From: Macrostomum lignano
Taxonomy: Eukaryota
Reading direction: 5' to 3'
Assembly (NCBI GenBank): GCA_002269645.1
Contig: NIVC01002582.1
Coordinates: forward strand, 95,748-159,747
DNA: 64,000 nucleotides
Under the pieces are notes generated by a model. It did no database searches. It saw only the letters and a program-made list of their open reading frames with translations, and was not told the origin of the DNA. Numbering within the stretch: position 1 is the stretch's first letter; each line of letters opens with the position of its first letter. Below, piece by piece: positions 2,731-38,800 of this stretch. Position numbers and translations under genes: made by a program.

Positions 2731-3214
2731 CTTCAAATTTGTCTGGGCAGAAAGGTGCGTGTATATACTGCTTAAAAATTGCACTACTTACTACTGACAA
2801 TGTTAGTACATCGCAGACTTATAATTGTTTTGTACTTTTTTGGCCAAATCTAAATGTTTTTTTGCGCTTGACTTTTACTGCTTTAAGTTTTTTGCTTGCT
2901 TTTATCGTATCGCAATGGCAAAGCACTTTAGTTGTCAGTGAGCCCTGAATTTGCACTGATAGTTTGCTTGACTATTATTGTCATCACTTAAAATCGTTTC
3001 CTTAATTGAACGCTATAAAGTTTATTTGTTGGCTTCTGCAATTTTTAGTGGTTTCTAATCAACATTTTAACCTGATTTGGCTAATCGCTCAGGACTTAAT
3101 ACTGTATTTAGCTCAATTTTTCAATTAAAAATATTAAATTTTAGCTCTAAATCATTTTTAGTAGATAGAAAGTAACGGCTGTAAGTTGTGCTTGTTTTTA
3201 TTCGATATTTCTGA

Positions 3215-4250
3215 CCCCCATTCTTCCCTCTCTTCCCCATTCTTCCCCCTTCCCCATTCTTCCCCCCTTCCCCATTCTTCCCCTCTTCCCTATTCTTCCT
3301 TCTCTTCCCTATTCTTCCCCATTCTCCCCCTCTTCCCTATTCTTCCCCATTCTTCCCCTCTCTTCCTTCTCTTCCCTATTCTTCCCCATTCTTCCCCATT
3401 CTTCCCCTCTCTTCCCCATTCTTCCCCTCTCTTCCCCATTCTTCCCCTCTCTTCCCCATTCTTCCCCTCTCTTCCCCATTCTTCCCCCCTTCCCCATTCT
3501 TCCCCTCTCTTCCCCATTCTTCCCCTCTCTTCCCCATTCTTCCCCTCTCTTCCCCATTCTTCCCCTCTCTTCCCCATTCTTCCCCCCCTTCCCCATTCTT
3601 CCCCTCTTCCCCATTCTTCCCCTCTCTTCCCCATTCTTCCCCCCCTTCCCCATTCTTCCCCTCTCTTCCCCATTCTTCCCCTCTCTTCCCCATTCTTCCC
3701 CTCTTCCCTATTCTTCCCCATTCTCCCCCTCTTCCCTATTCTTCCTTCTCTTCCCTATTCTTCCCCATTCTTCCCCTCTCTTCCCCATTCTTCCCCTCTC
3801 TTCCCCATTCTTCCCCTCTCTTCCCCATTCTTCCCCTCTCTTCCCCATTCTTCCCCCTTCCCTATTCTTCCCCCTCTTCCCCATTCTTCCCCCTTCCCCA
3901 TTCTTCCCCTCTCTTCCCCATTCTTCCCCTCTCTTCCCCATTCTTCCCCTCTCTTCCCCATTCTTCCCCTCTCTTCCCCATTCTTCCCCTCTTCCCTATT
4001 CTTCCCTCTCTCCCCCATTCTTCCCAATTCTTCCCCTCTCTCCCCCATTCTTCCTAATTCTTCCCCTCTCTCCCCCTCTCTTCCCCATTCTTCCCTATTC
4101 CCCCTCTCTTCCCCATTCTTCCCTATTCTTCCCCTCTCTCACCAATTCTTCCCCTCTCTCCCCATTCTTCCCAATTTCCCTCTCTTCTTCCCCTCTCTTC
4201 TCGATTCTTCCTCCTTTTTTCAAATTTTCCCAATTTCACTCTTTAATTCC
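3215..4250. repeat. Polypyrimidine tract of ~10-bp units (CTTCCCCATT / CTTCCCCTCT)
   Basis: About 1 kb of almost pure C/T on the + strand with 10-bp periodicity. Confidence 0.95.
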
Positions 4251-4857
4251 CATTCCCTTTTTGAAAAGGAGTTTCCATCTAGCATTCAGCTTCAATTGCA
4301 AGTTTCTGCTAGACCTGCAACTTAACTTAATTCGCTATTCATTTCGACCCAGCTCTGAGAAATGTGTAGTCATTTAGTTTATATTCATTTATTTACAAAT
4401 ATTATTCTAAGCTTGTAAAATCGTTAATGCTGTACAAATATGCTTTTTTGACAAGAAATGTCTTGCTTCCATTTATTAGTTCATATTTATTTTTTTCAAT
4501 TTTCCTAATTTCTATTTGCATGCCAGTTGCTTTGATTGCGAGATAACCGCTTGTAAAACTGAATGTTTGTTTGTTATAATTGAATTTGTGTCAAAGTTTC
4601 TAATTTTGCTTGACTTTTTTCTATTCCTTTTTTAAGCATAACAACGAGAGCTGTCCATGATTCTGACTGTTAGCTTGCAAATATTATTAATATTTAATTA
4701 CTTTAATTTATTACATAACTGTTTTCTGGGTTTGTCAATTGTTATAAATATAACATTTAGCAAACCTTGCTGTGCTAAACCGTTTCTCTTCCCTTGAAAC
4801 TGATTCTTCAAATGATACTGTATTTTTGATATCTGTGTTCATCTTTTTGAGACCAAT

Positions 4858-6030
4858 TTGTGTCTCCAGCTTGTCTCTAGATTGTGTCTTCAGCTTGTCT
4901 CTAGATTGTGTCTCCAGCTCGTCTCTAGATTGTATCTTCAGCTTGTCTCTAGATTGTGTCTTCAGCTTGTCTCTAGATTGTGTCTTCAGCTTGTATCTAG
5001 ATTGTGTCTTCAGCTTGTCTCTAGATTGTGTCTTCAGCTTGTCTCTAGATTGTGTCTTCAGCTTGTCTCTAGATTGTGTCTCCAGCTCGTCTCTAGATTG
5101 TATCTTCAGCTTGTCTCTAGATTGTGTCTTCAGCTTGTCTCTAGATTGTGTCTTCAGCTTGTATCTAGATTGTGTCTTCAGCTTGTCTCTAGATTGTGTC
5201 TTCAGCTTGTCTCTAGATTGTGTCTCCAGCTCGTCTCTAGATTGTGTCTTCAGCCTGTCTCTAGATTGTGTCTCCAGCTCGTCTCTAGATTGTGTCTTCA
5301 GCTTGTCTCTAGATTGTGTCTTCAGCTTGTCTCTAGATTGTGTCTTCAGCTTGTCTCTAGATTGTGTCTTCAGCTTGTCTCTAGATTGTGTCTTCAGCTT
5401 GTCTCTAGATTGTGTCTTCAGCTTGTCTCTAGATTGTGTCTTCAGCTTGTCTCTAGATTGTGTCTTCAGCTTGTCTCTAGATTGTGTCTTCAGCTTGTCT
5501 CTAGATTGTGTCTTCAGCTTGTCTCTAGATTGTGTCTCCAGCTCGTCTCTAGATTGTGTCTTCAGCTTGTCTCTAGATTGTGTCTTCAGCTTGTATCTAG
5601 ATTGTGTCTTCAGCTTGTCTCTAGATTGTGTCTTCAGCTTGTCTCTAGATTGTGTCTTCAGCTTGTCTCTAGATTGTGTCTCCAGCTCGTCTCTAGATTG
5701 TGTCTTCAGCTTGTCTCTAGATTGTGTCTTCAGCTTGTATCTAGATTGTGTCTTCAGCTTGTCTCTAGATTTTGTCTTCAGCTTGTCTCTAGATTATATC
5801 CAGATTGTCTCTAGATTGTGTCTTCAGCTTGTCTCTAGATTGTGTCTTCAGCTTGTATCTAGATTGTGTCTTCAGCTTGTCTCTAGATTTTGTCTTCAGC
5901 TTGTCTCTAGATTGTGTCTCCTGATGTGTCTCTAGATTGTATCCAGATTGTCTCTAGATTGTGTCTCCAACTTGCCTCTAGATTGTGTCTCCAAGTTGTC
6001 TTTAGATTGTGTCTCTAGATTGTCTATAGA
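4858..6030. repeat. 24-bp minisatellite (TTGTGTCTTCAGCTTGTCTCTAGA)
   Basis: About 45 highly homogeneous units. They give the periodic LSLDCVFS / CLQLVSRL ORFs. Confidence 0.97.
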
Positions 6031-6526
6031 TTTTTTCCGCAGACTGTCTTTAAATTGTCTACAATTTGTTTCAAAAAATCTTGTGCACATGCATTGTTTT
6101 AACTATGAAGTAATAAAATGTGTCTGCAGATTGTGTCCAGATTTGATGTTGCTTGTTGCTGTGGAGGGTAGCCGTGACAGTCAGTTACTTCATGCTGCTT
6201 ACTGTTGTTAAAACTGCAGCAATTTTTTTACTTCCGACAAGACAAGACCACCTTGTTGAAATCGAAATTGAAACTCCATTTTCAAATGACTAACTAATTA
6301 GCTTCCAGTCCAGATGCTATTTTTAGAGTTCCACGATTTTAGACTTGGGAAAAGAAAAAACAGACGGAAAGTACCGCGGCCATAGACATGATTTTCATCA
6401 TCTTCGGTACAGTTTAGCCGCTGTGAATTAGTGAACTACAGACTGCTTATTGCTCTCTTAATGTTTTAATTTATAAAAGCAGAGCCATTCAAGAGTTGAA
6501 GCAGCAACAGCACCTACTTGAAAAAG

Positions 6527-6979
6527 ATGTCTTCTGGCCAGCAATCTCCATCCCCTGCCGTAGCCGCCGCTATCAAGCAGATTCGAATACAAACTGGCGT
6601 AGTCAAACGCCTAGTCAAAGAGGTTCGAATGTACCAAACCGAATCTGCCAGTCTGCTAGCCGAACTTGAGCAGCTGAAAATGAAGCAGGTGCCTTCTTCT
6701 ACGGCTAGCGAAGAAGCCGAGCATCGACTTCGCAAACGGCAGGAGGTGCTGCGCGAATCCCAGATGATGGTGCCGGATACGGAGAGACGTTTAAGCACCG
6801 CCAAAGAACGCTTAGACTCCCTGCTTCAGCAGCACAAAGGTCTGTGCGACTCCGACCCGGTGTATCTGGAGGCTGTCGAAGAGTTGAAGAAATTGTCTGT
6901 TAATGATGAGGCAGCCTCTGCCGATGCCAGCGCTGGTAAAGCTGCCGAGCTGCCGCAGAAAGAAGCTGGAGACTGTTGA
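6527..6979 (+). CDS. TBCA: Tubulin-specific chaperone A (cofactor A), intronless, with a short C-terminal extension
   Basis: IKQIRIQTGVVKRLVKE...QEVLRESQMMVPDTERRL matches the TBCA family motifs (human QIKIKTGVVKRLVKE...EILQESRMMIPDCQRRL). First ATG at 6527; the track starts at a TTG at 6518. AATAAA near 7224. Confidence 0.93.
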   Translation: MSSGQQSPSPAVAAAIKQIRIQTGVVKRLVKEVRMYQTESASLLAELEQLKMKQVPSSTASEEAEHRLRKRQEVLRESQMMVPDTERRLSTAKERLDSLLQQHKGLCDSDPVYLEAVEELKKLSVNDEAASADASAGKAAELPQKEAGDC

Positions 6980-8203: not shown

Positions 8204-11200
8204 TCAACGGTTCGATTGCTTTGAGGCGGCGGAACCGCTGCCTCGGCCGCTGGCAGACTCCAGCTGGTGCTCCGACTCGACCGCCGCTGCCGCCGGGGGC
8301 GTCTCCTCCTCTCCGGCGCCGCCCCAGCGCTCCAATTCCTGACGCACCATGCGCTCCATCTTCTCCCGTTTCTCAGCCTCGCTGTCGCCCTCGCACTTGC
8401 CGATGGAGTCCAGCAGGCGACTCATCGTCTCGCGACGCTTCAGCTTGGCGCGCTCCATGCTCTCGAGTTTCAGCAGGACAGAGTCGATTCGATTCACGAT
8501 GCCGCCGATGCTGTGCTCCATGCGGTCCACCCGGCGGGACAGCGTCGTGAACTCGTCGATGGGGACGCCGCTGCCGCCGCCGCCGCTGTTGCTACCGCTG
8601 GTGTTCGGTCGGCCGCCTCTGGTGGCGCTGCGCATCGAGCCGCGTAGGCTGACAGCGCCGTCTCTGTCGTCGCCTGCCAGTTCGTCGTTGTCGGCGTCTC
8701 CGTCGTCGGCGCCGACGCCGGCGCTGCCCTGGCGCTGCTGCTCCGCGCGCTCACTTTCGATTTGACTGTTCAGGGCGGCCTGAGGGGCGCGTGGCATGCG
8801 TGGTGGGGGGGAGGATTTCTTGACGGTTTTTTTGCCATGTATCCTTCTTTGACCTCTAATTGTTCTGTAATAGCGCGATTCCTAATTCACCGCTTCTTGA
8901 TTCACAGATTCCTGATTCACGGATTCCTGATTCACAGATTCCTGATTCACCGATTCCTGATTCAAGGACTCTTGATTCACAGATTCCTGGTTCACTGATT
9001 CTAAATTTGCCATTTCGCTGCCTCACCTTTTGTCCCTCGAGCTCCCACTGCATCTTGCGCTGCTCTTCTTCGTCCAGCACCCTATCGCCGTCCATGTCGT
9101 ACCGGGCAAACAGGGCCTCAATTTCGCCGTCAGCGTAGCCTCGCCTTCAATTGTGATTGGCGGTTCGGAGGCCAAAAGTAAACGCACAATTTTTTGAGGC
9201 AAGCGATGTTTGTAAGAAGGGTGTCAGCTAGGGGTCAGTTGCTTGGAAAGACGTTCATCAAGATACTCGTATTAAAGTATTTTCGAGAACACCATATATG
9301 ATATTGTCAGTAGAGGATGTTGTCAGTAGGAGATATTGTCCGTAGAGGATGTTGTCAGTAGGGGATATTGTCAGTAGGGGATATTGTCAGTAGGGGATGT
9401 TGTCAGTAGGTATTAGTGTCGGGAAATATGCTGTCAGATTGGCCAGCAGATCCCCAACTGTCTCAAACTCACATCTTCAATTCGGTTCGCCACTCCTCAA
9501 AGTCCAGCTGCCTGTCGTTGTTCATGTCAGCAGATTGCATCGCCCGTTGAATGTCGACGATTTTGTCGCGTCGCAGGTGCAGCTTGTCGAGGACACGGCC
9601 GGCTCGCTAGGAAAGAGAAGGGACGGTTTGAATCAGGAAAGAATAAAAGATTCGTATGGCCGACTTAAGCTGAATCTAAATGCCCTGCAATAAATTATGT
9701 ATTCTCTTAATTGCTTAAGTTTGGCGTTGCTATGGCGACGAGCAAAGTGTTACGACACAACATATAAAACTGGTCTGAACATCTAATACTATAGAAGCTT
9801 AATGGATCTGTAAGTGATGCGTTAAGCGTGATGCGCTATGTGTTTAATTTTTAATGACATTAAATGCGAGAGTTCTATTGAACAGAATGTTAAAATTGAT
9901 TTTAAGGATGAGTTCTCACAGACCTACATTGAAGCACACCTTGTGCTCCAGTTTGGCACCTCATGGTTCTCTTTTGGCGCATCTCACAGTTCCATTTGGG
10001 CACATCTTACAGATCCATTTGGGCACATCTTACAGATCCATTTGGGCACATCTTACAGATCCATTTGGGCACATCTTACAGATCCATTTGGGCACATCTT
10101 ACAGATCCATTTTGGCACATCTTACAGTTCCATTTGGGCACATCTTACAGATCCATTTGGCACAGCAATTTGTCAGGGTTGCAGTGTTCCCTAATGCTCA
10201 CGAATCACTTAATACTAACGATTATAGTATAGTCAATAAAACCCTACCTGCTTAAAATAGTCGGTCATCTCGAAGTCGTTCGGTTGATTAGCCAGGTTGC
10301 TCTTCACCTCGCTGTACGTGTCGTTAATGATCGCCAGGAACATGTTGATCAGCACGAAGAAAACGAAGAACACGTACAGGATGAAGTAGATCGGGCCCAG
10401 CACTCGGTGCGCGTTCTGCAGACTGGCGAAGTCAAAATCGCCCAGAATGATGCGGAACAGCGTGAAAATGGCCTGCTGAAATTCTCTGAAGTCTTCAACT
10501 TTGGTGCCAAAGATCAGGTAGCCCAGCTGAGCAAAGGCGAAGAATACAATGAAGAACATCACGGCGAAGCCCAGTAAGTCTTTAGCGCAGGCGCCCAGAG
10601 TTGAGCTCAACTGCGTCATGGTCTTATTAAAGCTGATGTACTTGAAGATCTTCACCCAGGCGAAGAACACCGTGATAGCGATGGCCTGGTTAAACTGTTC
10701 CTGCCAGAAGCTGAGGAAGTCGAAGTCCGGATATTGAGTCTCGTCCTCCAGTAGTCTGGTGAGCTTGTTCCCAACGCTGATGGTTCGGTAGATATTGAAG
10801 GCGGCGCAGACCAGGGCAATTACAATCACGACAATGTCAAGCCAGTTCCAGAACGAGCTGAAATAAGCCAACTTGTGCCGCTTGATCTCGATGATCTCTT
10901 CAACAATGTAGTAGCAGATGAACAGCATGAAGATGCACTCGCAGGCCAGTACGAAATAGTCGATAGGTTCAACGTAGCGCAGAAGCTTCACAGTGCGAAA
11001 CTCCCAAGAGGTGAAGCCGCCGCCAGTTGCCGGGAATTCAGCTATCAATTTGATCACGCAGAACAGGTTAATGTTAGCGTTGTACACTGTGAAGTCAATG
11101 AACACAGCCCTAGTAGCCCTGTCAATCCACAGGCCATGGAAGAGTTCATCAATTTTTGCAGTGGATTCTTCGCGGCTCCGGCCCAGATCGATGTAATATC

Positions 11201-14200
11201 CGCCGCCGTTGTACGTGGCGAGCTTGCCGGAGTAGCCGCGACCGTCTAGCTGTTGTTCGGTGCTGTAATTCCAAGCCGTCGAGTTCATGTAGCCGAACGG
11301 TTCGCGGCTCTCGGCGCTGCGGCTGTACATGGCGTAGCAGGCGCGGATGTTGGCGCGAAAATCTGTCGCGATTGAGCAGCTGTCGTTGCGGACTCGAACC
11401 TGGCGGACAGATTGCCATTTTTGGGCAGCGTTAATAACTATCTATAATGTTTCTAATTTGTAATTTATATAATGAGAATAATTTATTACGCCTGGCCTAA
11501 TTTGACCAGATGTGCAACCGACAGCTCAGCCGCAGCTATTGCGCGGCGCATCTGAAGGCTGCGTACGGCTGTTCAGTCCAAGGACTGGGGAGTCGCCACA
11601 CACAGCCTCAATTACCCCAGCCAATGCTGGCACCCATTTTACAGCTGGGTGAACTGAAGCAATGCAGAGTTCAGTGTCTTGCTCAAGGACACGAATTGTT
11701 CCGAGTGGGTCGAGACTCCAACTCCCGACCTTTCAGTCGTGAGTCCAACATCCGAACCACTAGGCTACATCCCTTACAACACAACCCTTTTAGCACACGT
11801 CCGCGCATAAATAAGGAAACTTGCTGCTCTATTTTTAACTTATTTTATTGTTTTCCTTACTGATTTCACCAAAAACCCAAGCGTCCACCATGAATAGGAC
11901 TGTCAAGGGGGGCATGGCGCAGCCCAGTGGTCAAGCACGGCGCTCTGATGAGCCAGCGGCCCAGACTCGATTCCAAGTGTGGTTACATTGACTTGGGGCT
12001 AAATTGGAATCTCGGTTTGGCTCTGCTCGTGCAATTAATGACCTTAGGGGCCAACCCCCAAGTCACAGTGAAGTGTACATGCCTAACGATAGATAAAGTT
12101 AGGGCCGCTGTACACTCCTGTGTGAGTGTGTGCCTGTGCGTATGACTGTGTACGTATCCGCGGCAGTAATGCCTCTCACTGGTTGTGAGACAATGTCGCT
12201 TAAAGTGCGCCAGGGTGCATTCCCGTTTGATTCATGGCCTCTCAGCAACTCCCGTTTAACCCTGTCATCTCTCAAAATTCCACATTGATTGATCAATCAA
12301 AATCAACAGCCAATCACCTGTCGCATCCTTGGTACGCCGAGCAGTTTGTTCTCATAGTAGATGAAATTTCGCTCTCTCGGATCGGTCACATTGGCATTGT
12401 TATACCAGGTGTCCCAGTACAGGCCGGAGATCAGGGGGCCTTGAGCGAACTGAGGGTTTAATTATGAAAAATATCATGCCTTCGGTATTTTTCATTTTTT
12501 TTATTATTGTCACAGCAGTGTGCCAGGAAGCCGATCGCTCACCCCCCACCAGTCCGCGAAGTTCTTCACCGACGTAAAAGTAGCACCACTGGCGGTTGGC
12601 GTGGTCAGGAACAGCGAGTTCATCACGAACGTGTAATAGTACATTGTTGACGAGGTCATGCCGAAGGTCACTGGAATTATAAGTAGTTAATTTTACTTTC
12701 TGAATTTTTCCTTGTTAAACACTAAAAATGACTGTCACTGATTTGACTTTCACTGATTTGACTTTCACTGATTTGACTTTCACTGATTTGACTGTCACTG
12801 ATTTGACTGTCACTGATTTGACTATCACTGATTTGACTGATTTGACTGTCACTGATTTGACTGTCACTGATTTGACTGTCACTGGTTTGACTGTCACTGA
12901 TTTGACTGTCACTGATTTGACTGTCACTGATTTGACTGTCACTGGTTTGACTGTCACTGATTTGACTGTCACTGGTTTGACTGTCACTGATTTGAGTGTC
13001 ACTGATTTGACTGTCACTGATTTGACTGTCATTGGTTTGACTGTCACTGATTTGACTGTCACTGTTTTGACTGTCACTGTTTTGACTGTCACTGTTTTGA
13101 CTGTCACTGTTTTGACTGTCACTGTTTTGACTGTCACTGTTTTGACTGTCACTGACTGTCACTGCTTGACTGTCACTGTTTTGACTATCCCTTACTGTCA
13201 CTGATTTGACTGTCACTGTTTTGACTGCCACTGCTTGAGTGTCACTGCTTGACTGTCACTGTTTTGACTGTCACTGACTGTCACTGCTTGACTGTCACTA
13301 TTTTGGTTGCCATGGATCAATCTCTGGCCCCAACCTAAACTTCAATTCTAACCCTAATTACCCTAACCCTAAACTTTCTGTGCTCTATGCAGTGCCCCAT
13401 ACAATTTGAATTTATAAGTACGTAAATTCGATAATAAGTCAGTGAAAGTGACATACAGATCATTAGCACTATCAGGAACAGGCAGTACACGATGAGCTCT
13501 CTCAGGGTGGTCTTGATGTACAGCTCTCGGTTCTCGCGAGTATCCATGGTGTAATTGGTGCGCCACACAACTGCATTTCGTGAAATGGTGATTTTGTGTG
13601 CATCGTACGAGAAGTGTGATTGTCACAGGAAAGCAGAGGTGTAAAATTAAACTACACGTTTATAATAGCCGTGATTTAAATAAAAGAAGCAAATAAAGTT
13701 GTTTAAATTTAGGCATTATAAATTATTACGAATGCAGATGACCACCAGGAATAGGCAGTACATGACCAGCTCGCGCAGAGTGGTCTTGATTTTCAACTCA
13801 GCGTTCTGCGACACATCCTCCGTGTCCTTTGTCATCCAGACGGCTGAGTGAGTCGATTTTAGATAAATGATATAGTCTTGGTTACCAGGAGCCTAGCCAG
13901 GGGAGCGGCTAGATGGGGTCGCCACCCTCACACTCCCTGACCCCCCTGTTCAAAGTTTTAACAGTTTTCCAACAGCTCCTTTGGTGCCATCGGTGCCCGT
14001 TTGGTGTCGGTGTGCCGTTTGATGTCGGTGTGCCGTTTCATGTCGGTGTGCCGTTTGATGTCGGTGTGCCGTTTCATGTCGGTGTGCCGTTTGATGTCGG
14101 TGTGCCGTTTCATGTCGGTGTGCCGTTTGATTTCGGTGTGCCGTTTGATGTCGGTGTGCCGTTTGATGTCGGTGTGCCGTTTGATGTCGGTGTGCCGTTT

Positions 14201-16030
14201 GATGTCGTTGTTCCATTTGGTGTCGGTGTGCCGTTTCATGTCGGTGTGCCGTTTCATGTCGGTGTGCCGTTTCATGTCGGTGTGCCGTTTCATGTCGGTG
14301 TGCCGTTTCATGTCGGTGTGCCGTTTATTGTCGGTGTACCGTTTCATGTCGGTGTCCCGTTTCATATCGGTGTCCCGTTTCATATCGGTGTCCCGTTTGA
14401 TTTCGGTGTGCCATTTAGTGTCAGTGTGCCTTTTGGTGTCGGTGTGCCGTTTGGTGTCGGTGTGCCGTCTCATGTCGGTGTGCTGTTTATTGTCGGTGTG
14501 CCGTTTGGTTTCGGTGTGCCGTTTGGTGTCGGTGTGCCGTTTGGTGTCGGTGTGCCGTTTGGTGTCGGTGTGCCGTTTGGTGTCGGTGTGCCGTTTGGTG
14601 TCGGCGTGCCGTTTATTGTCGGTGTGCCATTTAGTGTCAGTATCTGTCCATCTGGCCCACGAAGCCTCTCTATCTGTCCATCTGGGTCCTTTGAAACTTT
14701 ACAATAATATAGCGATCCAGTCTGCTCAAGGTTTGGATCTCTTCTCAAATCTTTTTCTTCTCTCCTCTTGTCTCCACTCTTCTCCTTTATTCCCTTTCCT
14801 CTCATCTTTTCTCCAATCTCTCTTCTCTCCCCTCTCCCCTTCTATGGCCCAGAGTCATGCGTTCATCGGTTCTCCCGGGCAAATGGGGGCAAATGGGGGC
14901 GTCGAGTGTACAAGCCGTTGAAAAAAACTTACCGCGCACGCCTCTCTTAAACTTTCCCCAGCATCCGGTAGCCTCATCATCGGTGCCATTATTAGCCGGC
15001 ATGATAGCCGCCTGGCTGCCAAAGTTCGACGAGTTCTCCAGCTGTTCGGCTGCGGCAGAAGTTGTCGGATTGTCGGCGTTGGCTTCCCAGGCCTGAATGG
15101 AACGATGAGGATTAGGGTAGACAGTTAGCCCGAAATTGTGTTAGTTGAATGTAGGGCGCAGTTTCTGCGAAAGCAACTCCCTCTTGAGCCGTGTCTTTAA
15201 CCCTAAATCTCCCCTTGATTCTTAGCATCTCAGTATGAAGGGGTTGTAGCCTGTTGGTTAGAGCGCAGGACTCACGACTTGAAGGGCGGGGGTTCGATTC
15301 TCGACTCAATCGGAACAATTTGTGTCCTTGAGCAAGACACTTAACTCTGCATTGCTTCAGTTCACCCATATGTAAAATGGGTGCCAGCATTAGCTGGGGT
15401 AATTGAGGGTGTGTGTGGTGACCCCCCAGTCCTTGGACTGAACAGCCGTACGCAGCCTTCAGGTGCGCCGCGCAATAGCTGCGGCTGAGCTGTCGGTTGC
15501 ACATCTGGCCATTAGTCGTAGTCGTCGTGTCGCACAATCGGCGATAGGCATTACTGCCCATTCCGCCGACTCCCCTGAGCAGGCAAACACTCACACAAGA
15601 GTGTACAGCGGCTCTAACTTTATTTATCGTTAGGCATGTACACTTCACTGTGCCTTGGGGGTTGGCCCTCAGTGGTGTTAATTGCACGCGCAGAGCCAAG
15701 CCGAGATTCCAATTCAGCCCCAAATTAATGTGACTGCACTTGGAATCGAGCCTGGGCCGCTGGAACATGGATCAGAGCGCCGCGATGGACTACTGGTGGG
15801 TTACGGCTTTACCGTCTTAGCTCTTTTGTACGGAACTATACAGTGGTCATGACGGTTCTCACCTGACTGCCGCCAAGTTGACCACGCGACTGGGCCGACC
15901 CAGTCCTCACAACGTCGTCGTCGTGGACGGTGCGACGCGATTTGGCGCTCGACGCCTGCGGCTGCGTCTGCTGCTGCTCGGCTCCGCTAGCAGATTTTCG
16001 ACTCCTAGCGCTGGCTGGTCTCGACGCCAT
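8204..16030 (-). CDS. PKD2: Polycystin-2 family (TRPP) cation channel, about 893 aa
   Basis: Exons, all GT-AG and phase-consistent: 15863-16030, 14933-15092, [13730-13843 or 13457-13570], 12543-12670, 12318-12449, 10248-11399, 9473-9606, 9027-9144, 8204-8779; total 2682 nt. Motifs: [21 protein letters not shown] (TOP domain), [16 protein letters not shown] pore, [21 protein letters not shown]6, EF-hands, [18 protein letters not shown] coiled coil. Confidence 0.96.
8877..8998. repeat. 15-bp intronic minisatellite (GATTCCTGATTCACA)
   Basis: About 8 units in the last PKD2 intron. Confidence 0.85.
9300..9410. repeat. 16-bp intronic minisatellite (GGGGATATTGTCAGTA)
   Basis: About 6-7 units. Confidence 0.8.
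9985..10162. repeat. 23-bp intronic minisatellite (TCCATTTGGGCACATCTTACAGA)
   Basis: About 7-8 units. Confidence 0.9.
11505..11773 (-). mobile_element. tRNA-derived CORE-like SINE, family A
   Basis: The reverse strand starts GGGATGTAGCCTAGTGGTT (A box) and has a B-box-like segment. It continues GTGTCCTTGAGCAAGACACTGAACTC...TTCAGTTCACCCAGCTGTAAAATGGG, resembling the MIR/CORE domain. Four other copies in the window. Confidence 0.8.
11907..12220 (+). mobile_element. tRNA-derived SINE, family B
   Basis: Head GGCATGGCGCAGCCCAGTGGTCAAG...GACTCGATTCC (A and B boxes). Body shared with the copies at 15527, 23375 and 43937. Confidence 0.75.
12728..13300. repeat. 15-bp intronic minisatellite (ACTGATTTGACTGTC)
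   Basis: About 35 units with variants. Confidence 0.95.
13457..13570 (-). CDS. PKD2: PKD2 alternative exon 3b (pre-S1/S1: [37 protein letters not shown])
   Basis: 114 nt, acceptor AAATGCAG, donor GTATGT, phase 1-1. Confidence 0.9.
13730..13843 (-). CDS. PKD2: PKD2 alternative exon 3a (pre-S1/S1: [37 protein letters not shown])
   Basis: 114 nt, acceptor CTCACTCAG, donor GTAATA, phase 1-1. Paralogous to exon 3b and absent from the ORF track. Confidence 0.88.
13990..14640. repeat. 18-bp intronic minisatellite (GTCGGTGTGCCGTTTCAT)
   Basis: About 36 units. Confidence 0.95.
14650..14850 (-). mobile_element. hAT-like non-autonomous element fragment with a GA/CT tract, family C
   Basis: GAAGCCTCTCTATC...GGTCCTTTGAAACT...GATCCAGTCTGCTCAAGGTTTG is the reverse complement of about 47810-47880, followed by a CT-rich tract. 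Confidence 0.6.
15241..15514 (+). mobile_element. CORE-like SINE family A, near full length
   Basis: GGGTTGTAGCCTGTTGGTTAGAGCG head, GGTTCGATTCTC B box, CORE-like GTGTCCTTGAGCAAGACACTTAACTC...TGTAAAATGGG, and the shared 3' body. Confidence 0.85.
15527..15800 (-). mobile_element. SINE family B, tail-to-tail with the family A copy
   Basis: Reverse complement matches 11907-12220. Confidence 0.75.
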
Positions 16031-19119: not shown

Positions 19120-20627
19120 TTAAACAGGTGTCAGGATCCTTAAACAGGTGTCAGGATGCTTAAACAGGTGTCAGGATGCTTAAACAGGTGTCAGGATCCT
19201 TAAACAGGTGTCAGGATGGTTAAACGGGTGTCAGGATCCTTAAACAGGTGTCAGGATGCTTAAACAGGTGTCAGGATGCTTAAACAGGTGTCAGGATGCT
19301 TAAACAGGTGTCAGGATGCTTAAACAGGTGTCAGGATGCTTAAACAGGTGTCAGGATGCTTAAACAGGCGTCGGGATACTTAAACAGGTGTCAGGATGCT
19401 TAAACAGGTGTCAGGATACTTAAACAGGTGTCAGGATGCTTAAACAGGTGTCAGGATGCTTAAACAGGTGTCAGGATGCTTAAACAGGTGTCAGAATGGT
19501 TAAACAGGTGTCAGGATGCTTAAACAGGTGTCAGGATGCTTAAACAGGTGTCAGGATGCTTAAACAGTTGTCAGGATGGTTAAACAGGTGTCAGGATGCT
19601 TAAACAGGTGTCAGGATGCTTAAACAGGTGTCAGGATGCTTAAACAGGTGTCAGGATGCTTAAAAAGGTGTCAGGATGCTTAAACAGGTGTCATTAGGAT
19701 CCTTAAACAGGTGTCAGGATGCTTAAACAGGTGTCAGGATGCTTAAACAGGTGTCAGGATGCTTAAACAGGTGTCATTAGGATCCATAAACAGGTGTCAG
19801 GATGCTTAAACAGGTGTCAGGATGCTTAAACAGGTGTCAGGATGCTTAAACAGGTGTCAGGATCCTTAAACAGGTGTCAGGATGGTTAAACGGGTGTCAG
19901 GATCCTTAAACAGGTGTCAGGATGCTTAAACAGGTGTCAGGATGCTTAAACAGGTGTCAGGATGCTTAAACAGGTGTCAGGATGCTTAAACAGGTGTCAG
20001 GATGCTTAAACAGGTGTCAGGATGCTTAAACAGGTGTCGGGATACTTAAACAGGTGTCAGGATGCTTAAACAGGTGTCGGGATACTTAAACAGGTGTCAG
20101 GATACTTAAACAGGTGTCAGGATGCTTAAACAGGTGTCAGGATGCTTAAACAGGTGTCAGAATGGTTAAACAGCTGTCAGGATGCTTAAACAGGTGTCAG
20201 GATGCTTAAACAGGTGTCAGGATGCTTAAACAGTTGTCAGGATGGTTAAACAGGTGTCAGGATGCTTAAACAGGTGTCAGGATGCTTAAACAGGTGTCAG
20301 GATGCTTAAACAGGTGTCAGGATGCTTAAAAAGGTGTCAGGATGCTTAAACAGGTGTCATTAGGATCCTTAAACAGGTGTCAGGATGCTTAAACAGGTGT
20401 CAGGATGCTTAAACAGGTGTCAGGATGCTTAAACAGGTGTCATTAGGATCCATAAACAGGTGTCAGGATGCTTAAACAGGTGTCAGGATGCTTAAACAGG
20501 TGTCAGGATGCTCAAACAGGTGTCAGGATGGTTAAACAGGTGTCAGGATGCTTAAACAGGTGTCAGGATGCTTAAACAGGTGTCAGGATGCTTAAACGGG
20601 TGTCAGGATGCTTAAACAGGTGTCAGG
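19120..20627. repeat. 20-bp minisatellite (TTAAACAGGTGTCAGGATGC) with a 666-bp higher-order period
   Basis: About 75 units. Diagnostic variants recur 666 bp apart. Confidence 0.97.
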
Positions 20628-20722
20628 ACGCGCGTACAGAAGATTGTGTGACCTCCGTTACGTTTAACTTAGCATCAGTAAAAATTATTACAATACTCAA
20701 CTCGCCAGCTCAGACCGTCAGC

Positions 20723-23700
20723 ATGGCACTAGTCTACCAGATCAAGCTCCTAGCCAACATGCTGTCGCGAAAGAAGACTCTAGACGAAGCTCACATGGAA
20801 GAGACTCAACTAAATCGCTGCCTAACAACTCTCGACCTCACCGCACTGGGCGTCGGCTCGACCCTGGGCGCCGGTGTCTACGTGATCGCCGGAGAGGTCG
20901 CCCAGAAAGCCACCGGCCCAGCTGTGGTCGCGTCGTTCTTCATTGCGGCGTCTGCGTCAATCTTGGCTGGCCTGTGCTACGCAGAATTCGGCGCCAGAGT
21001 GCCCAAGTCGGGCTCCGCTTACGTCTACAGCTACGTGTCAGTTGGAGAACTGATGGCCTTCGTCATCGGCTGGAATCTCATCCTCGAGTACGTGATTGGA
21101 ACTGCAAGCGTTGCTCGGGCTTGGTCGCAGAACTTTGACAGCCTAGTTGGCGGCAAGATTATCGATTTCTTCAAGGACTACATGAGCATGTCGCTTCCTG
21201 GACTGGCCGATTATCCTGACCTGTTCGCACTGGGCATGGTGCTGCTTCTAACGGCTATCATTGCTATCGGGGTCAAGGAGTCCGCCTGGGTGACAAACAT
21301 CTTCACTTTCATCAACCTGATTGTACTGGCTGTTGTGTTCGTTGCGGGATGCTTCTTGTCCAGCTTTGCTAACTGGAGCATCCGACCGGACTTGAACGGC
21401 ACGGTTGTGTACCACAATGTCACGTACTCGGCCGATCAAGTTGGCGATGGCGCCTTTCTGCCGTTCGGTCTGCAGGGTGTTGTCTCCGGCGCTGGGACCT
21501 GCTTCTACGCGTTTGTGGGATTCGATGCGATTGCCACGACTGGAGAAGAGGTTCGTTAGTGAGTTCATTGAGTTGTTTTAATGAATGTTACATAGCTATG
21601 TACGCTAGCACACGATAGATCACACAGGGTGGACAGAAGCTTTGACTTTCTCATTGTCAGACAGGCATGTACACGCTCTGTGCATTGAGAGTTTAACCTC
21701 ATTGTTGAGAATCGTTAAAGCTTTGCGGGCGCCCCTGTCTCTTGGTTGGCGCCCCTGTCTCTTGGTGGGCGCCCCTGTCTCTTGGTGGGCGCCCCTGTCT
21801 CTTGGTGGGCGCCCCTGTCTCTTGGTGGGCGCCCCTGTCTCTTGGTGGGCGCCCCTGTCTCTTGGTGGGCGCCCCTGTCTCTTGGTTGGCGCCCCTGTCT
21901 CTTGGTGGGCGCCCCTGTCTCTTGGTGGGCGCCCCTGTCTCTTGGTTGGCGCCCCTGTCTCTTGGTTGGCGCCCCTGTCTCTTGGTTGGCGCCTCTGTCT
22001 CTTGGTGGGCGCCCCTGTCTCTTGGTGGGCGCCCCTGTCTCTTGGTGGGCGCCCCTGTCTCTTGGTGGGCGCCCCTGTCTCTTGGTTGGCACCCCTACTC
22101 CTGTGTCCTAGGCCTAGGCCGGTTGAAAGTTGGGATCCTGCCATTTGTTGAGTACCATCTGTCCATTAGTTTTTGAGCAAAACTTTTGTAGGGACGATTG
22201 GGGCTCCTCTGCGTACGCCACTGTACAATAGCCAGATGCAAAAAATCAAGAACTAAATTTTAAGTACTCTACTAAAATGTTAGTAGTAGAATACCAATAT
22301 TTTTTTAAAATCCGCTCTTGATTAATCTATTTATAGGTGAAAAATCCTCAACGAGCTATCCCAATCAGCATCATTTTGAGTCTGGCAATTTGCTTCGTAG
22401 CCTACTGCGGCGTCAGCTCCGTTCTCACCTTGATGCAGCCGTACTTCGCTCTGGACCCGTTTGCGCCCCTGCCTCAAGCGTTCGCCGCTCACGGTTGGCT
22501 TGTTGCCAACTATTTCATCGCTGTTGGCGCCATCTGCGCCCTGTCCACTAGCCTGCTGGGAGCCATGTTCCCCCTGCCCCGAGTGGTCTACGCCATGGCT
22601 AGCGATGGGTTGATCTTTCGCTTTCTATCTCGGGTTCATCCGCGTCTCGCTACTCCATTAATTGCCACCGTGCTGACGGGAGTCATGGCCGGCGTCATGG
22701 CATGCATGTTCGAGCTGAAAGCACTGGTTGACATGATGTCTATCGGTACACTACTAGCCTACACTCTTGTAGCCCTGTCTGTGCTCATACTTCGCGGTAG
22801 TTGCGACGTTTTCAACAATCGAGCAGTGTCTGCTCCGAGTGAGACCCCTAGTGGAGAGCAGCAGGTTCTGGAAGAGCCCGTTGTTGCAGCGACAAGCTCA
22901 ATGAAAACTGTACTGGTCGACGTTGAGGAAACCGACTTTGTTGAGCTCATTGAGTCTACCAGAGCAGATAAATTTACGCTTAAATCCTATCTGAGCTGCT
23001 CATTCCGTAGAGGTGGCTACTCTGAGCCGAACAATCTGACTGAACAGGTCACTCGAGTCAACTCCGGCTTATTTATGATCTCAGCAGGTGTGTTGGCATT
23101 CGTACTTGAGCGGATGCCTAACCAACTGGGAGCTGGCAGGCCAGAAGCAGTGATCCCGGCATCCATTGCCTGCCTACTGTGTCTGTTAGCCATGATCAGT
23201 TTGGCCATGCAGCCGCAGAGTCGAAAACCAGTGGCTTTTAAGGTAATGCTATTTCATATGTCTTAAAGTGGTAAAGAAATTTATAAAGGGTTGACCTGAT
23301 GCTCACAAATGCTATTCCTGTGTCGCTTTGTAGACCCTTTGTAAACCGCGGCCTTTTTAGAGGCAGGGGCCTGTGTGCACCCTGACGCACTTTAAACGAC
23401 ATTTTCGCACAACCGGCGTGAGGCATTGCTGCCCATTCCGCCGACTCCCCTGAGCAGACACAAAAGCGCGCGGATACGTACGCAGTCATACGCACAGGCA
23501 CACACTCACACAGGAGTGTACAGCAGCCCTAACTTTATTTATCGTTAGGCATGTACACTTCACTGTGCCTTGGGGGTTGGCCGTCAAGAGCGTTAATTGC
23601 ACGAGCAGAGCCAAGCCGAGATTAGCTAGCCCCAAATTAATCTGACTGCACATGGAATCGAACCTGGGCTGCTGGCTACAGCCCCTACGGAATCTTTGAC

Positions 23701-30488: not shown

Positions 30489-31109
30489 AAAGTAATATCG
30501 TAGCTAGGTCGCTTAACCTCATAAATCCCGAAATTTCGATACGTCAAAGACGACATAATTCACAAGTTCGAAATCTTATAAACTTGAAGGTTAAAAGTCT
30601 CGAAGTTTCCTCTCCAATTTTGCTTAAAAATCATCGAAATCGATTAAAGAGCTTGCGGAAGTGACTATATTAAGACTCTTGGACGATGTGAACTTTAAGC
30701 TTGAAAAATGGAAAGATTGTCAAATGCAATATGATGCGAAACATTCGGGAAACCCCGCTATTGTAGATAGCCATGTAGCTACTAGCTCGTATGCATTGCT
30801 ATTACGAGAGTACAACTAAAATAGTCAATTTTAAACATGAAACAAAGCGAACTCTGGAATTTATTTTGTACAAGTCCATTAAAAGCTTCGTCCTTGTTAA
30901 AGATTAACGAAAAAAAATAGATTTGGCATAAGCTATTGAAATTTATTTTTTTAAGCACATAAACAATAATTTCATCTGAGAAGTAAATATATATAAATCT
31001 AAGCTGAATCTATGATGTACGAGTACAGTGTTACTTTTAAAAAATTTTTCACGATGTGAATTACTACGGTAGCTACAATTAACATAATACCCGGTTGAAA
31101 ATAAATCAG

Positions 31110-32320
31110 GATTGGCCCACTAAAATTGGCCCACTGATCGGCCACTTCGTGTCCCAAAAGCCCACTGAAAAAGCCCCCTTATTTTTACAAATCATGCTCA
31201 GCCCACTGCTCGGCCCATCTGACGGCCCACTGAAATAAAGCCCACTGATCGGCCCACTGACGGCCCACTGAAATGAAGCCCACTGACGGCCACTGAAATA
31301 AAGCCCACTGATCGGCCCACTGACGGCCCACTGAAATGAAGCCCACTTATCGGCCCACTGACGGCCCACTGAAATGAAGCCCACTTATCGGCCCACTGAC
31401 GGCCCACTGAAATGAAGCCCACTGATCGGCCCACTGACGGCCCACTGAAATGAAGCCCACTGACGGCCCACTGAAATAAAGCCCACTGATCGGCCCACTG
31501 ACGGCCCACTGAAATGAAGCCCACTTATCGGCCCACTGACGGCCCACTGAAATAAAGCCCACTTATCGGCCCACTGACGGCCCACTGAAATGAAGCCCAC
31601 TGATCGGCCCACTGACGGCCCACTGAAATGAAGCCCACTGACGGCCCACTGAAATAAAGCCCACTGATCGGCCCACTGACGGCCCACTGAAATGAAGCCC
31701 ACTTATCGGCCCACTGACGGCCCACTGAAATGAAGCCCACTTATCGGCCCACTGACGGCCCACTGAAATGAAGCCCACTGACGGCCCACTGAAATAAAGC
31801 CCACTGATCGGCCCACTGACGGCCCACTGAAATGAAGCCCACTTATCGGCCCACTGACGGCCCACTGAAATGAAGCCCACTTATCGGCCCACTGACGGCC
31901 CACTGAAATGAAGCCCACTGATCGGCCCACTGACGGCCCACTGAAATGAAGCCCACTGACGGCCCACTGAAATAAAGCCCACTGATCGGCCCACTGACGG
32001 CCCACTGAAATGAAGCCCACTTATCGGCCCACTGACGGCCCACTGAAATGAAGCCCACTTATCGGCCCACTGACGGCCCACTGAAATGAAGCCCACTGAC
32101 GGCCCACTGAAATAAAGCCACTGATCGGCCCACTGACGGCCCACTAAAATGAAGCCCACTGATCGGCCCACTGACGGCCCACTGAAATGAAGCCCACTGA
32201 CGGCCCACTGAAATAAAGCCCACTGATCGGCCCACTGACGGCCCACTGAAATGAAGCCCACTGATCGGCCCACTGAAATAAAGCCCACTGACGGCCCACT
32301 ATGTCGTCACGTCGGGAATA
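31110..32320. repeat. Modular GCCCACTG minisatellite (units of about 25-38 bp)
   Basis: Mixed modules CGGCCCACTGA / CGGCCCACTGAAATGAAGCCCACTGAT / ...AATAAAGCCCACT. Confidence 0.95.
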
Positions 32321-35873: not shown

Positions 35874-38800
35874 TCAAAACTTTGGAAAGAAGAGCAGCTT
35901 TAATAGTGTAGATTTGTAGCACGGTATCTGCCGGTTACCAGTCTCATTGAGAACATCTGATGTCACCTTGGGCAGTAAATGTGTGAACTCTACTGGCGAA
36001 TCCGGACTGTCATCGCTGTAAGCCTCGAGAACTGAGTCTTTGAACTTTTGAATGAACACGGTACCTGTGTTGAGATTACGATCTGACTTGTCACACTCAA
36101 CGACGCTGTAGATATAAAGCGAGTCCTCATTCTTCCAGAAATTTTCAAGACCGTGGCAAACTCGGAGTGTTATCTCCCGTGGGACGTGACGACAGGCCTG
36201 TGTAATGAAAATCTTCGGTTTTCCTTTCAGCCATTGGTGAATTTGAATGGGCCCGAAAAGTTCGTCTAATTTGACTTCAGCTCCGTCTGACGAGTACACG
36301 GAGCCCAGGAAACCATGCGACATGATGCACAGCAAGAACGCAGTGCAATTTTTGTACTCGTCCTCCGTGAATAATATTCTCAGCTCTCTGACCTCATCGA
36401 AAAAGGCTCTGCCCACGTCTCGTAACAGATGATACTTAAAACCCAGCTTTTGCAGACTCAGGGGCAAGCAGTCGAGCTCATCGTCTCTCTCAGCCCCGAC
36501 GCGTGTTTGAAGTCGTGCAGGATCGTTAAATATGATATTGTTGATCACAATGGCCAATCGATCATCTGAGTTGCCAACGTCGTATCGTTGCCTTTGAGTA
36601 GCTGTCGCCCCACCAGAAGATGCTGAGCCACCCGCAGTTCCCTGCGCAGATCCGCCAGCAGAACCTCCAGCTGAGGCGCCAACACCACCTGCTGAGTTGT
36701 CCGGGTCCTCTGGATTTTCATGCTCCAAATAGACTTGGCCTTGATTGGTTTGATTCGGCAGCTGTCTAATGCTGAAAGTTTTCAAATTGTCGTAAATGTA
36801 CATTCAAATAAACTTTATTTTTGGCAAGTCTTATTTAAGCATCACAAAACTCACCACTCTCGAATAAAAGCTGCACACTCCCAATGCTTTCCCAGCTCGG
36901 CCCACTGCAGGCTTGTTCTCTTGTACTCTCCAACAACTTCCCAATCTTGTAGGCTATCGATGCGCTCACTCAGAACCTTCAAAACCTCCTGACAGCCCTG
37001 TCGAGCGGCCCAAATAACTGGTGTATTACCAAATCGATCAGCATGTCTGATGCTGGATCCGGAGTCAAGCAATATTTTCACCACTTTAGCGAAGTTTTTT
37101 TTCGCTGCATGCGTCAAAGCGGTGTAGCCAAGCCGATCCTGTAAAAATTGTTGTGTCTCCAGCTTGGTTGTGTATTTTAAGTGTGTAATTGCAATTTTCT
37201 CGTGAACTCACCTCGAGATTGAGATCTGCATCCATCTGTAGCAGCTCTGAAACTACTTCATCATGGCCAGAGTGAGCTGCGAGCATCAAAGGCGTCTGTC
37301 GCATGTTATCGGGCCTGTTCGTCTCAATCTGCAGTACGTTTTCGTCCAGAATTCGCCGAAACACTTTCACCGGTTGCAGGTGGCCGAGAAAGCTCGCCCA
37401 ACTCAGAGCGGATCTGCCTGATACGTCGCAAATCGAGGCGACTGCTGGGACCTTTTCTAATAGCTTCTCGACTATGTCGCTTCTGTTCTTCTTGGCAGCA
37501 ATTACCAGCAGCGTCTCCTTAAATGGCGGCAGCTGAATACTTAAGTCCGATGAGCTGTGAACGTGACGATTAAGATCTTCATCACTCCAATCTTGTGGTC
37601 TCCTGTAAAATGAACAAATGATGCTACAGAGATAATTGTAAAATGTACCTTTGATCCGTGTTATTTTCATTGAAAAAAATACTTTAGTCACTAACCTTCG
37701 TGCAGGTTTCGTCGTGTACTCATTCAGTACAAGGTTCTTTAGCTTATTTCTCAAACGTTCAACATTATCCCAGTCTCTTGTGTCGAATGCCAGACGATTT
37801 TCGGTTAGTATAGTTTCCATTTTGGCTAGACAGAACTGTACTTGCTCCTTAGAGCTACTGTAATGAGCGATGGTCATGTGCTCTTCAAAGTCAGGGTACT
37901 CCTGTAATTTCGAAAACCAGGCATCAAGTTCGCTGTTTGTAGCTCCTAACAGCTCGGCTCTCAGGCTCCACGCGAGGCAGCAGAAGTTCACGTACAGATG
38001 AGAGCTTCCTGTCCTGGATTTTCGAATAACAAGCAGGTTTCTGGTAAATTCTGGCAGGCATGAGAAATTCACAACTTCTGAAGGACAGGGAAGACAGAAT
38101 CGCCATGCCCAATCTGTGCCCTGAAACACTTGATGCATATTTTCGATTTGATCTGGCTTCCAGCTTCTCATCACCGTGTGGTTGTCAAGTCCTTTCAGAA
38201 CTTTTTTTGCGGCTTCGAAGTCTTCAACTTTATATAGCAGTAGAATATTCAAACAAGCTGCTGTAGTCTTGCACCAAGTCAGATTCTCTAGAGGTTTTAA
38301 GAGTGCCATGGCATCACCAGCCTTGTCCGAAAACAGTTCAAAGTAGCTACGAACCACATCGTACAGCTTTCCGAATGTAGAGACGGTGATTTCTGAGTTT
38401 CCTTCAGTCTGCAACGGGTTCAAGGCTTGCAGTGGAACCATTGTGAATGGATGAAAATAGAAATTTTCATTCTGCAGTGGCTTCAGCTGGTGCTGCAGCT
38501 TTTGTACGACAGCTTCGGCTAGGTTAGTTGTGCGAAGTCGCTTGAGCTGGTCTCGAACCCTCGATTTCGTTTGCTGAAAGTCGCCACCGACACCAGCATT
38601 GGCAAAGTACAGAGGGCTGTCCGGGAGAAAAAAACTCGGCATACATATGTCCGGATCGGGACCTGAGTCGATGAACTCGAGTAGTTTATCGAGCGACTCG
38701 TTTAAAAGCCGAATTAAGTTATCTGGCCTCCAAATTTGTTCATCAAAACCGTGCTCATGAAGTAAGTAAAGCAGCAATGTCTTGGCGTGGTACGTCTTGA

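Follow-up and report, generated by a model that had tools for sequence, protein, structure and literature searches.

Tandemly duplicated pre-S1/S1 exons, candidates for alternative single inclusion, in a TRPP/PKD2-family channel gene of the flatworm Macrostomum lignano

We analyzed a stretch of 64,000 nucleotides (nt) from the genome of the flatworm Macrostomum lignano (GenBank assembly GCA_002269645.1, contig NIVC01002582.1, positions 95,748 to 159,747), hereafter referred to as the window, whose numbering is used throughout unless another locus is named. On its minus strand lies BOX15_Mlig009305g2, a putative channel gene of the TRPP/PKD2 family, in which two adjacent homologous exons, A and B, encode alternative versions of the first transmembrane helix (S1) and of the segment preceding it. 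The reading that we prefer, to which we assign a probability of about 0.68, is that an old tandem exon duplication gave rise to alternative exons, only one of which is included in a given transcript, and that the default choice is opposite in two gene families, namely this one and the paralogue family Mlig004710, whose corresponding exons are termed A-like and B-like. According to this reading, duplication of a 114-nt exon containing the pre-S1 tryptophan (Trp), a linker and S1 would have produced two interchangeable versions of one module, such that splicing of the surrounding constitutive exons as E2-A-E4 or E2-B-E4 would yield two subunits differing in only 14 of 37 residues. In whole-animal RNA, the A form would be dominant for the gene considered here and the B-like form for Mlig004710, while B would still be used in this gene, probably in a minor or cell-type-specific form. 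The choice would be exclusive, since a product with both exons would have seven helices and an inverted orientation of everything past the extra one, and the isoforms would differ in gating or in regulation by the lipid phosphatidylinositol 4,5-bisphosphate (PIP2). Finally, the conserved, UCAC-rich intron between A and B would carry the elements that control the choice.

The exon pair, its host gene and the encoded module

The gene comprises the following parts, all on the minus strand.

8204 to 16030, minus strand: coding region of the TRPP/PKD2-family gene BOX15_Mlig009305g2, 893 amino acids (aa), with the ATG at 16030 and the stop at 8204
16030-15863, minus strand: exon E1
14933 to 15092, minus strand: exon E2, constitutive, 160 nt, ending in phase 1 (..GVR G, followed by gtaagt) and encoding most of the pre-S1 helix
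13843-13730, minus strand: exon A
13571 to 13729, minus strand: A-B intron, 159 nt, U2-type GT-AG
13570-13457, minus strand: exon B
12543 to 12670, minus strand: exon E4, constitutive, 128 nt, coding for the last part of S1 and the first part of the extracellular polycystin/TOP domain
12449-12318, minus strand: exon E5
11399-10248, minus strand: exon E6, a single exon of 1152 nt
reaching 8204, minus strand: C-terminal exons

Both exons of the pair measure 114 nt and are of phase 1-1, with an intron of 159 nt between A and B. The acceptors end in CACTCAG (A) and AATGCAG (B), while the donors start with GTAATA (A) and GTATGT (B). The two exons are identical at 23/37 aa and 72/114 nt, including a 16-nt stretch, GTACTGCCTRTTCCTG, that is near-identical in both, and their codons differ by 10 synonymous and 14 non-synonymous changes, corresponding to a ratio of non-synonymous to synonymous substitution rates (dN/dS) of about 0.32 (Nei-Gojobori). 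When the A peptide was compared with the 64-kilobase window by tblastn, B was recovered at E = 2e-12 and the next match at E = 0.58, and the likeness is thus far above chance. Coordinates, translation and tblastn therefore agree with an earlier note on this DNA, which had described two homologous 114-nt exons of phase 1-1, 159 nt apart and with intact splice sites. The junctions proposed there, with the E2 donor after 14933 and the next exon starting at 12670, are likewise correct. Equal length, equal phase and AG...GT boundaries are seen at five further loci, and the pair presents the length, frame, homology and GT-AG features from which exclusive exons are predicted at the sequence level. 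The frame also remains open with both A and B, or with neither.

Within exon B there is also an ATG that is in frame and lies in a strong context (ACCATGG, 13533-13539). The GenBank model of Mlig004710g3 (P0138) begins at the equivalent methionine inside the B-like exon (MTEDTRED..., at about 4001 of locus L008), which may reflect either a 5'-truncated model or an alternative start.

When stitched together, E1-E2-A-E4-E5-E6 form an open frame, and over 618 aa its translation shows 100% identity to GenBank PAA56728.1, annotated as 'hypothetical protein BOX15_Mlig009305g2' of M. lignano. Precomputed Pfam matches of the gene product comprise PKD_channel, Polycystin_dom, Ion_trans, YVC1_C and EF-hand (including PF08016, PF20519, PF00520 and PF23317), and the nearest solved structures, by sequence match to the PDB, are those of PKD2L1 (E = 5.5e-52) and PKD2 (about 1e-40). 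The product combines a six-helix core with PKD_channel and polycystin (TOP) domains that lie between S1 and S2, as is characteristic of the TRPP/PKD2 family, and, judged by its sequence, the gene is a channel gene of this family and a co-orthologue of vertebrate PKD2, PKD2L1 and PKD2L2. One-to-one orthology to PKD2 was considered and rejected, as polycystin-2 and polycystin-2-like 1 occur side by side among the database names and scores. In the N-terminal region, PKD2L1 outscores PKD2, and five paralogue families of M. lignano form a clade of their own (neighbour-joining, 165/200 bootstraps), inside which the branching order is left unresolved by the tree. The label 'PKD2' given in the earlier note is thus appropriate for the family but not for PKD2 specifically, whereas its proposal that the tandem duplicate encodes the pre-S1/S1 region of such a channel is supported by homology and by alignment to PKD2L1 and PKD2.

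Two further features of the gene structure were seen. Exon E6 encodes everything from the TOP domain through the end of S6 in one intronless piece, while the N-terminal membrane region is cut into small exons. In an older M. lignano annotation, gene copy g1 is broken into two models right at the exon pair (UniProt A0A1I8I1J2 and A0A1I8I176), one of which runs past the exon A donor into the intron (...VICIRNNA), while the other begins in E4 (MTSSTMYYY...).

In PKD2L1 and PKD2, the pre-S1 Trp and a lysine (Lys) of the TRP-like domain form a functionally essential pair (W81-K568 in PKD2L1, W201-K688 in PKD2), and the contact between them is modulated by PIP2 (PMC6483072). The Trp that occupies position 2 in both exons aligns with W81 of PKD2L1 (equivalent to W201 of PKD2) and is kept in A, in B and in both Mlig004710 exons. 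Moreover, W112 and K600 of the flatworm protein are invariant in 34 aligned homologues. In an AlphaFold2 model of the A isoform, with a mean predicted local distance difference test (pLDDT) score of 66.5, the pre-S1 helix, which is mostly encoded by E2, spans residues 100-112 and ends at W112. It is followed by a low-confidence linker (113-123), a long S1 helix (124-152), a beta-rich loop domain and then further helices. From the Trp alignment and the modelled helix boundaries, it follows that the alternative exons contribute the Trp together with the juxtamembrane linker and S1. The possibility that the A-type substitutions line one face of a continuous pre-S1 helix was rejected, as the modelled helix stops at the Trp. 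Given the Trp at the exon start and the conserved Lys, the module is therefore a plausible determinant of gating or PIP2 regulation. That the isoforms would differ in trafficking, partner binding or gating, as the earlier note proposed, should be taken as speculation.

Conservation and origin of the two exons

The paralogue family Mlig004710 consists of three copies on three further contigs, whose proteins are 68% identical to BOX15_Mlig009305g2. All three loci present an A-like exon, an intron of 163 nt and a B-like exon, with each exon being 114 nt long, of phase 1-1 and bounded by AG/GT, and both exons are intact as well in the two sister copies of the gene considered here (L001 and L002). 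Among the three copies of this gene, A and B show one difference each, synonymous in each case, and the variable columns amount to 1/114 in exon B versus 37/465 in introns (Fisher p = 0.003). The A-like exon of Mlig004710, which is not annotated, behaves in the same manner, with 1/114 variable columns, again synonymous, as compared to 43/667 in introns (Fisher p = 0.014). Between the families, synonymous sites are saturated, the proportion that differs (pS) being 0.6-0.76. B and B-like are identical at 30/37 aa with a pS of 0.76 and a corresponding non-synonymous proportion (pN) of 0.13, while A and A-like share 21/37 aa with a dN/dS of about 0.24. Ten positions that are invariant in 116 homologues (W2, T4, T7, E15, T20, T21, R23, E24, L25 and Y28) are all kept in the four exons, and B has no more private substitutions than do the S1 exons that are constitutive in the single-exon paralogues. 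The low dN/dS across families, the lone synonymous change among copies and the retention of the invariant residues all bear out the selection on both exons that the earlier note had suspected, and such purifying selection argues that B is used rather than being a relic.

The S1 exons of other animals and of the remaining M. lignano paralogues look like B, and, on this comparison, B would be the ancestral, canonical type and A the specialized one. The derived states common to both A-type exons are M/L3, K5, D6, V10, the loss of R11 and R14, K/R17 and M/L27. A-type exons have thereby lost three arginines (positions 3, 11 and 14) and carry T10V and Y17K/R, with several of the changes falling on strongly conserved positions (T10, R14 and Y/H17 occur in 103/116, 89/116 and 106/116 homologues, respectively). 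The differences between A and B lie in the juxtamembrane cytosolic linker and in the cytosolic end and body of S1, beside the Trp that contacts the TRP-like Lys. The earlier description of this contrast as acidic versus basic could not be upheld, since the net charge over positions 3-17 is -2 for A, -2 for A-like, 0 for B and -2 for B-like, and the contrast is thus inconsistent.

Shared derived states, the same order and phase, and an alignable intron point to one duplication that preceded the split of the two families. Three further families, Mlig009158, Mlig005060 and Mlig010261, have a B-like exon only, and no remnant of A was detected in these single-exon paralogues at E < 0.01. With three families retaining only the B-like type, the A-type copy has probably been lost at least once.

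The A-B intron is also conserved. Between the families, the introns of 159 and 163 nt align with z = 4.9-5.5 relative to shuffled sequences, whereas seven further intron segments from both genes have z values between -1.2 and 1.7, making the A-B intron the sole intron segment that can be aligned between the two families. TAAASAACTTTATTT is a conserved block of the A-B intron, and the conserved block TAAA(C/G)AACTTTATTT lies about 25-40 nt past the exon A donor. Several (A/T)TCAC motifs occur at similar positions in both introns, with TCAC counts of 4 versus 0.8 expected (P = 0.005) and 5 versus 0.4 expected (P < 0.0002). UCAY clusters are bound by regulators of the Nova/Pasilla type, and UNAY also matches the branch-point consensus. 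Given its conservation, we infer that this intron holds control elements for the exon choice.

Exon choice and competing explanations

M. lignano has three near-identical copies of the gene (g1, g2 and g3), and all three GenBank proteins contain A, while none contains B. The annotated proteins of Mlig004710 instead include the B-like exon and skip the A-like exon, and no member of any M. lignano cluster carries the non-default exon. At all six loci, the annotated dominant transcript thus presents single inclusion. It should be considered that the GenBank annotation was derived from RNA-seq data with StringTie and TACO at an isoform-frac of 0.75, so that only dominant isoforms were kept (PMC5730564). 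The models therefore point to E2-A-E4, from which B is left out, as the main mRNA, but this is not proof that B is never used. As the annotation pipeline dropped minor isoforms, the absence of B from GenBank says little.

Concerning exclusivity, the topological argument made in the earlier note is sound, as two consecutive S1 helices would create a seventh helix and therefore invert the topology downstream. Single inclusion, which its claim of an exclusive choice entails, is seen in the RNA-seq-derived models, but no simple enforcing mechanism was found. Exclusivity is nonetheless likely, and a distal branch point or protein-mediated control may serve as the enforcing route.

Several points weigh against the reading of an old duplication with alternative single inclusion and should be kept in mind. 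None of the enforcing mechanisms that act by frame shift and nonsense-mediated decay (NMD), by a very short intron or by U2/U12 mismatch applies to this pair. Because both exons are multiples of three nt (3n) in length, including or skipping both leaves the frame intact and would escape NMD, the 159-nt intron is long enough for splicing without a steric block, and all sites are of the U2-type GT-AG class. Among the pairs predicted in C. elegans, those with 3n exons often proved to be tandem cassettes, as was the case for 8/41 predicted clusters (PMC4165533). An exact look-up of the full-length B isoform in a collection of 15 billion sequences gave no match, a homology search with the E2-B-E4-E6 fragment returned nothing above 55% identity, and no protein or transcript-derived sequence with the A-like exon of Mlig004710 was present in the searched collections. 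The three-copy comparisons concern very recent duplicates, for which gene conversion could add to the exon identity. A is closer to B (23/37) than to A-like (21/37), and the argument for a single origin thus relies on the derived residues, the arrangement and the intron, rather than on a resolved tree. Lastly, a conserved RNA structure in the A-B intron was sought across the six loci and rejected, the consensus reaching only -3.3 kcal/mol.

Some of these points would fit a fixed choice, with A being constitutive and B a leftover in this gene, and the reverse being true in Mlig004710, in which case subfunctionalization between the paralogues would already have resolved the duplication, leaving no live alternative splicing. 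All models of this gene with A only, all models of Mlig004710 with B-like only and the absence from databases of any product of the other exon would be accounted for, and the three paralogue families with a single B-like exon indicate that loss of one copy does occur. We nevertheless consider this explanation unlikely. The supposedly unused exons keep their frame, length, AG/GT boundaries and ten invariant residues, and their dN/dS is low despite saturated synonymous sites. Among recent copies they show a lone synonymous change, whereas 6-8% of the intron columns vary. Conservation extends to the A-B intron itself, and minor isoforms would have been dropped by the annotation pipeline in any case. 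More doubtful still is that A and B are independent tandem cassettes, with the A+B (seven-helix) form and the form with neither exon (no S1) both being appreciable and only single-inclusion products being functional. Here, in-frame double inclusion or skipping, a spliceable intron and the C. elegans precedent have to be set against single inclusion in the dominant transcripts at six loci, the inversion of downstream topology by two copies of S1 and a conserved A-B intron that suggests control of the A-B junction. Very improbable, in our estimation, is an origin by two independent, convergent duplications or an assembly or annotation artefact. The marginally greater likeness of A to B than to A-like and the 16-nt stretch that is near-identical in A and B would fit convergence, but the seven derived positions common to both A-type exons, the same order, phase and length, the similar intron sizes (159 and 163 nt) and the alignable intron speak for common descent. 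The artefact is excluded because the pair is found on six separate contigs.

The two introns that flank the pair contain tandem arrays, and these, together with one candidate pairing site, are as follows.

13997 to 14632, no strand assigned: tandem array with about 35 copies of an 18-nt unit, occupying the greater part of the E2-A intron
12729 to 13277, no strand assigned: tandem array with about 38 copies of a 15-nt unit, occupying the greater part of the B-E4 intron
13436 to 13454, minus strand, low confidence: positions +3 to +21 past the 5' splice site of exon B, complementary to units of the downstream array

The first 20 nt past the exon B donor look like the 15-nt unit of the downstream array in inverted form, and the segment 13436-13454 pairs with 12741-12789, 13145-13157 and 13267-13279 at -22.2 kcal/mol, the top value among 1782 windows. 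A similar pairing of donor and array, with an unrelated array, ranks second among non-array sites at one paralogue locus and is weak or absent in two other paralogue copies. In a control with the upstream array, equal energy was obtained at an arbitrary site in exon E4. After this control, which indicates that long arrays can produce such energies by chance, pairing of the exon B donor with the array could not be told from chance, and it is reported here as an observation, not as a mechanism. In Mlig004710g1 (L003, 2304-3589 versus 4189-5184), the arrays of the upstream and downstream introns are complementary to each other, at about -22.5 kcal/mol per 22-nt window and in many copies, and such pairing could loop out the exon pair. 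Complementarity between the upstream and downstream arrays was not seen in the gene of the window.

Related systems and further features of the window

Tandemly duplicated exclusive exons are known from several ion channels, including the 5A/5N exons of SCN/Nav channels, Cav pairs and Drosophila slowpoke (PMC9741552, PMC8373072, PMC5740500), and ion channels are the class most enriched for homologous exon substitution (PMC9741552). The flatworm exons resemble such pairs in being adjacent homologues of equal length and phase that encode a transmembrane segment with a linker and that have long been kept under purifying selection. They differ from the described pairs in belonging to the TRPP/PKD2 family and in the module affected, namely the pre-S1 Trp, linker and S1, and also in that exclusivity would here be achieved without NMD or a too-short intron. 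This is thus a known mode of producing channel variants for which we found no report in a PKD2-family gene. PKD2, polycystin and TRP do not appear in the main texts of two catalogues (PMC9741552 and PMC5740500), and literature pairing 'mutually exclusive exons' with 'polycystin' yielded no PKD2 event. The literature contained no mention of these M. lignano gene identifiers and nothing useful on Macrostomum polycystins. When 14 PKD2-like gene sets of hemichordates, echinoderms and bivalves were compared, no variation in the S1 exon or in the next one was seen among their RefSeq isoforms.

As in the coupling of vertebrate PKD2 and PKD2L1, the flatworm exons begin at the aligned Trp and the flatworm protein retains the Lys, although vertebrates encode the pre-S1/S1 region only once and the function of the flatworm channel is predicted from its sequence. 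The known splice forms of vertebrate PKD2 are exon-skipping forms. Within the TRP superfamily, a validated exclusive exon pair has been described in TRPL of Bactrocera dorsalis (PMC6137742), which differs in belonging to a TRPC-like subfamily and in affecting a different region. For Pkd2, two separate genes instead of alternative exons were reported in that study (PMC6137742).

A second lophotrochozoan candidate was found in a PKD2-like gene of Capitella teleta (KB311032.1), which has one S1 exon (1242-1355 of that locus, L009) and two adjacent copies of the exon that follows it.

4437-4567 and 4671-4801 of the Capitella teleta locus: copies of the next exon, 131 nt each, AG/GT-bounded, identical at 96/131 nt

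The first copy encodes TFSMTSPTMYYYTKVMSELFLDTQFEDTRNTFRGMTTMRDFWR, while the annotated Capitella protein uses the second. Since 131 equals 3n+2, double inclusion would shift the frame, and we consider the two an independent candidate exclusive pair. The Capitella pair is similar to that of the flatworm in that adjacent homologous exons encode part of the N-terminal membrane region in a lophotrochozoan PKD2-family gene. It is unlike the flatworm pair in that the next exon (covering the last part of S1 and the beginning of the extracellular domain) was duplicated, in that its length is 3n+2 and in that the event was independent.

A more far-reaching version of our preferred reading, to be considered tentative, would be that the exons form a regulated, cell-type-specific pre-S1/S1 switch that retunes the coupling of the N-terminus with the TRP-like domain (PIP2/gating) in a ciliary or sensory TRPP channel, with the choice under the control of the conserved UCAC-rich intron. 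The set of five paralogue families would then represent an ancestral pair resolving into separate genes, with two families keeping the pair but with opposite defaults and three having lost A, and, together with Capitella, tuning of the S1 region by exon swaps would constitute a recurrent theme of lophotrochozoan polycystin-2 channels.

Homologous exon substitution is rare, functionally weighty and concentrated in ion channels. If alternative use of A and B is true, it would be extended to the TRPP/PKD2 class, which is important in cilia, sperm and mechanosensation, and would provide a natural 'domain swap' of the Trp-linker-S1 module that is implicated in gating and PIP2 regulation of human PKD2 and PKD2L1. 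As M. lignano is amenable to transgenesis, isoform-specific reporters and knock-outs are feasible. In the paralogue set, moreover, it can be followed in a small and clean case how alternative splicing and gene duplication interact, with no general principle being changed.

Other open reading frames in the window with Pfam matches are listed below.

6518-6979, plus strand: tubulin cofactor A
20588-23266, plus strand: amino-acid permease, in two pieces
35874-36803, minus strand: caspase domain
37086-39131, minus strand: Mab-21-like with ankyrin repeats
40357-41577, minus strand: ankyrin repeats
56319-56981, plus strand: zf-C4H2
58644-59573, plus strand: reverse transcriptase fragment

Long arrays of the minisatellite type, several of which are open in multiple frames, are found in the window at 1-1600, 3100-4300, 4700-6100, 12729-13277, 13997-14632, 21600-22170 and 31100-32300. 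These are consistent with the share of about 15% that tandem and simple repeats contribute to the M. lignano genome (PMC5730564).

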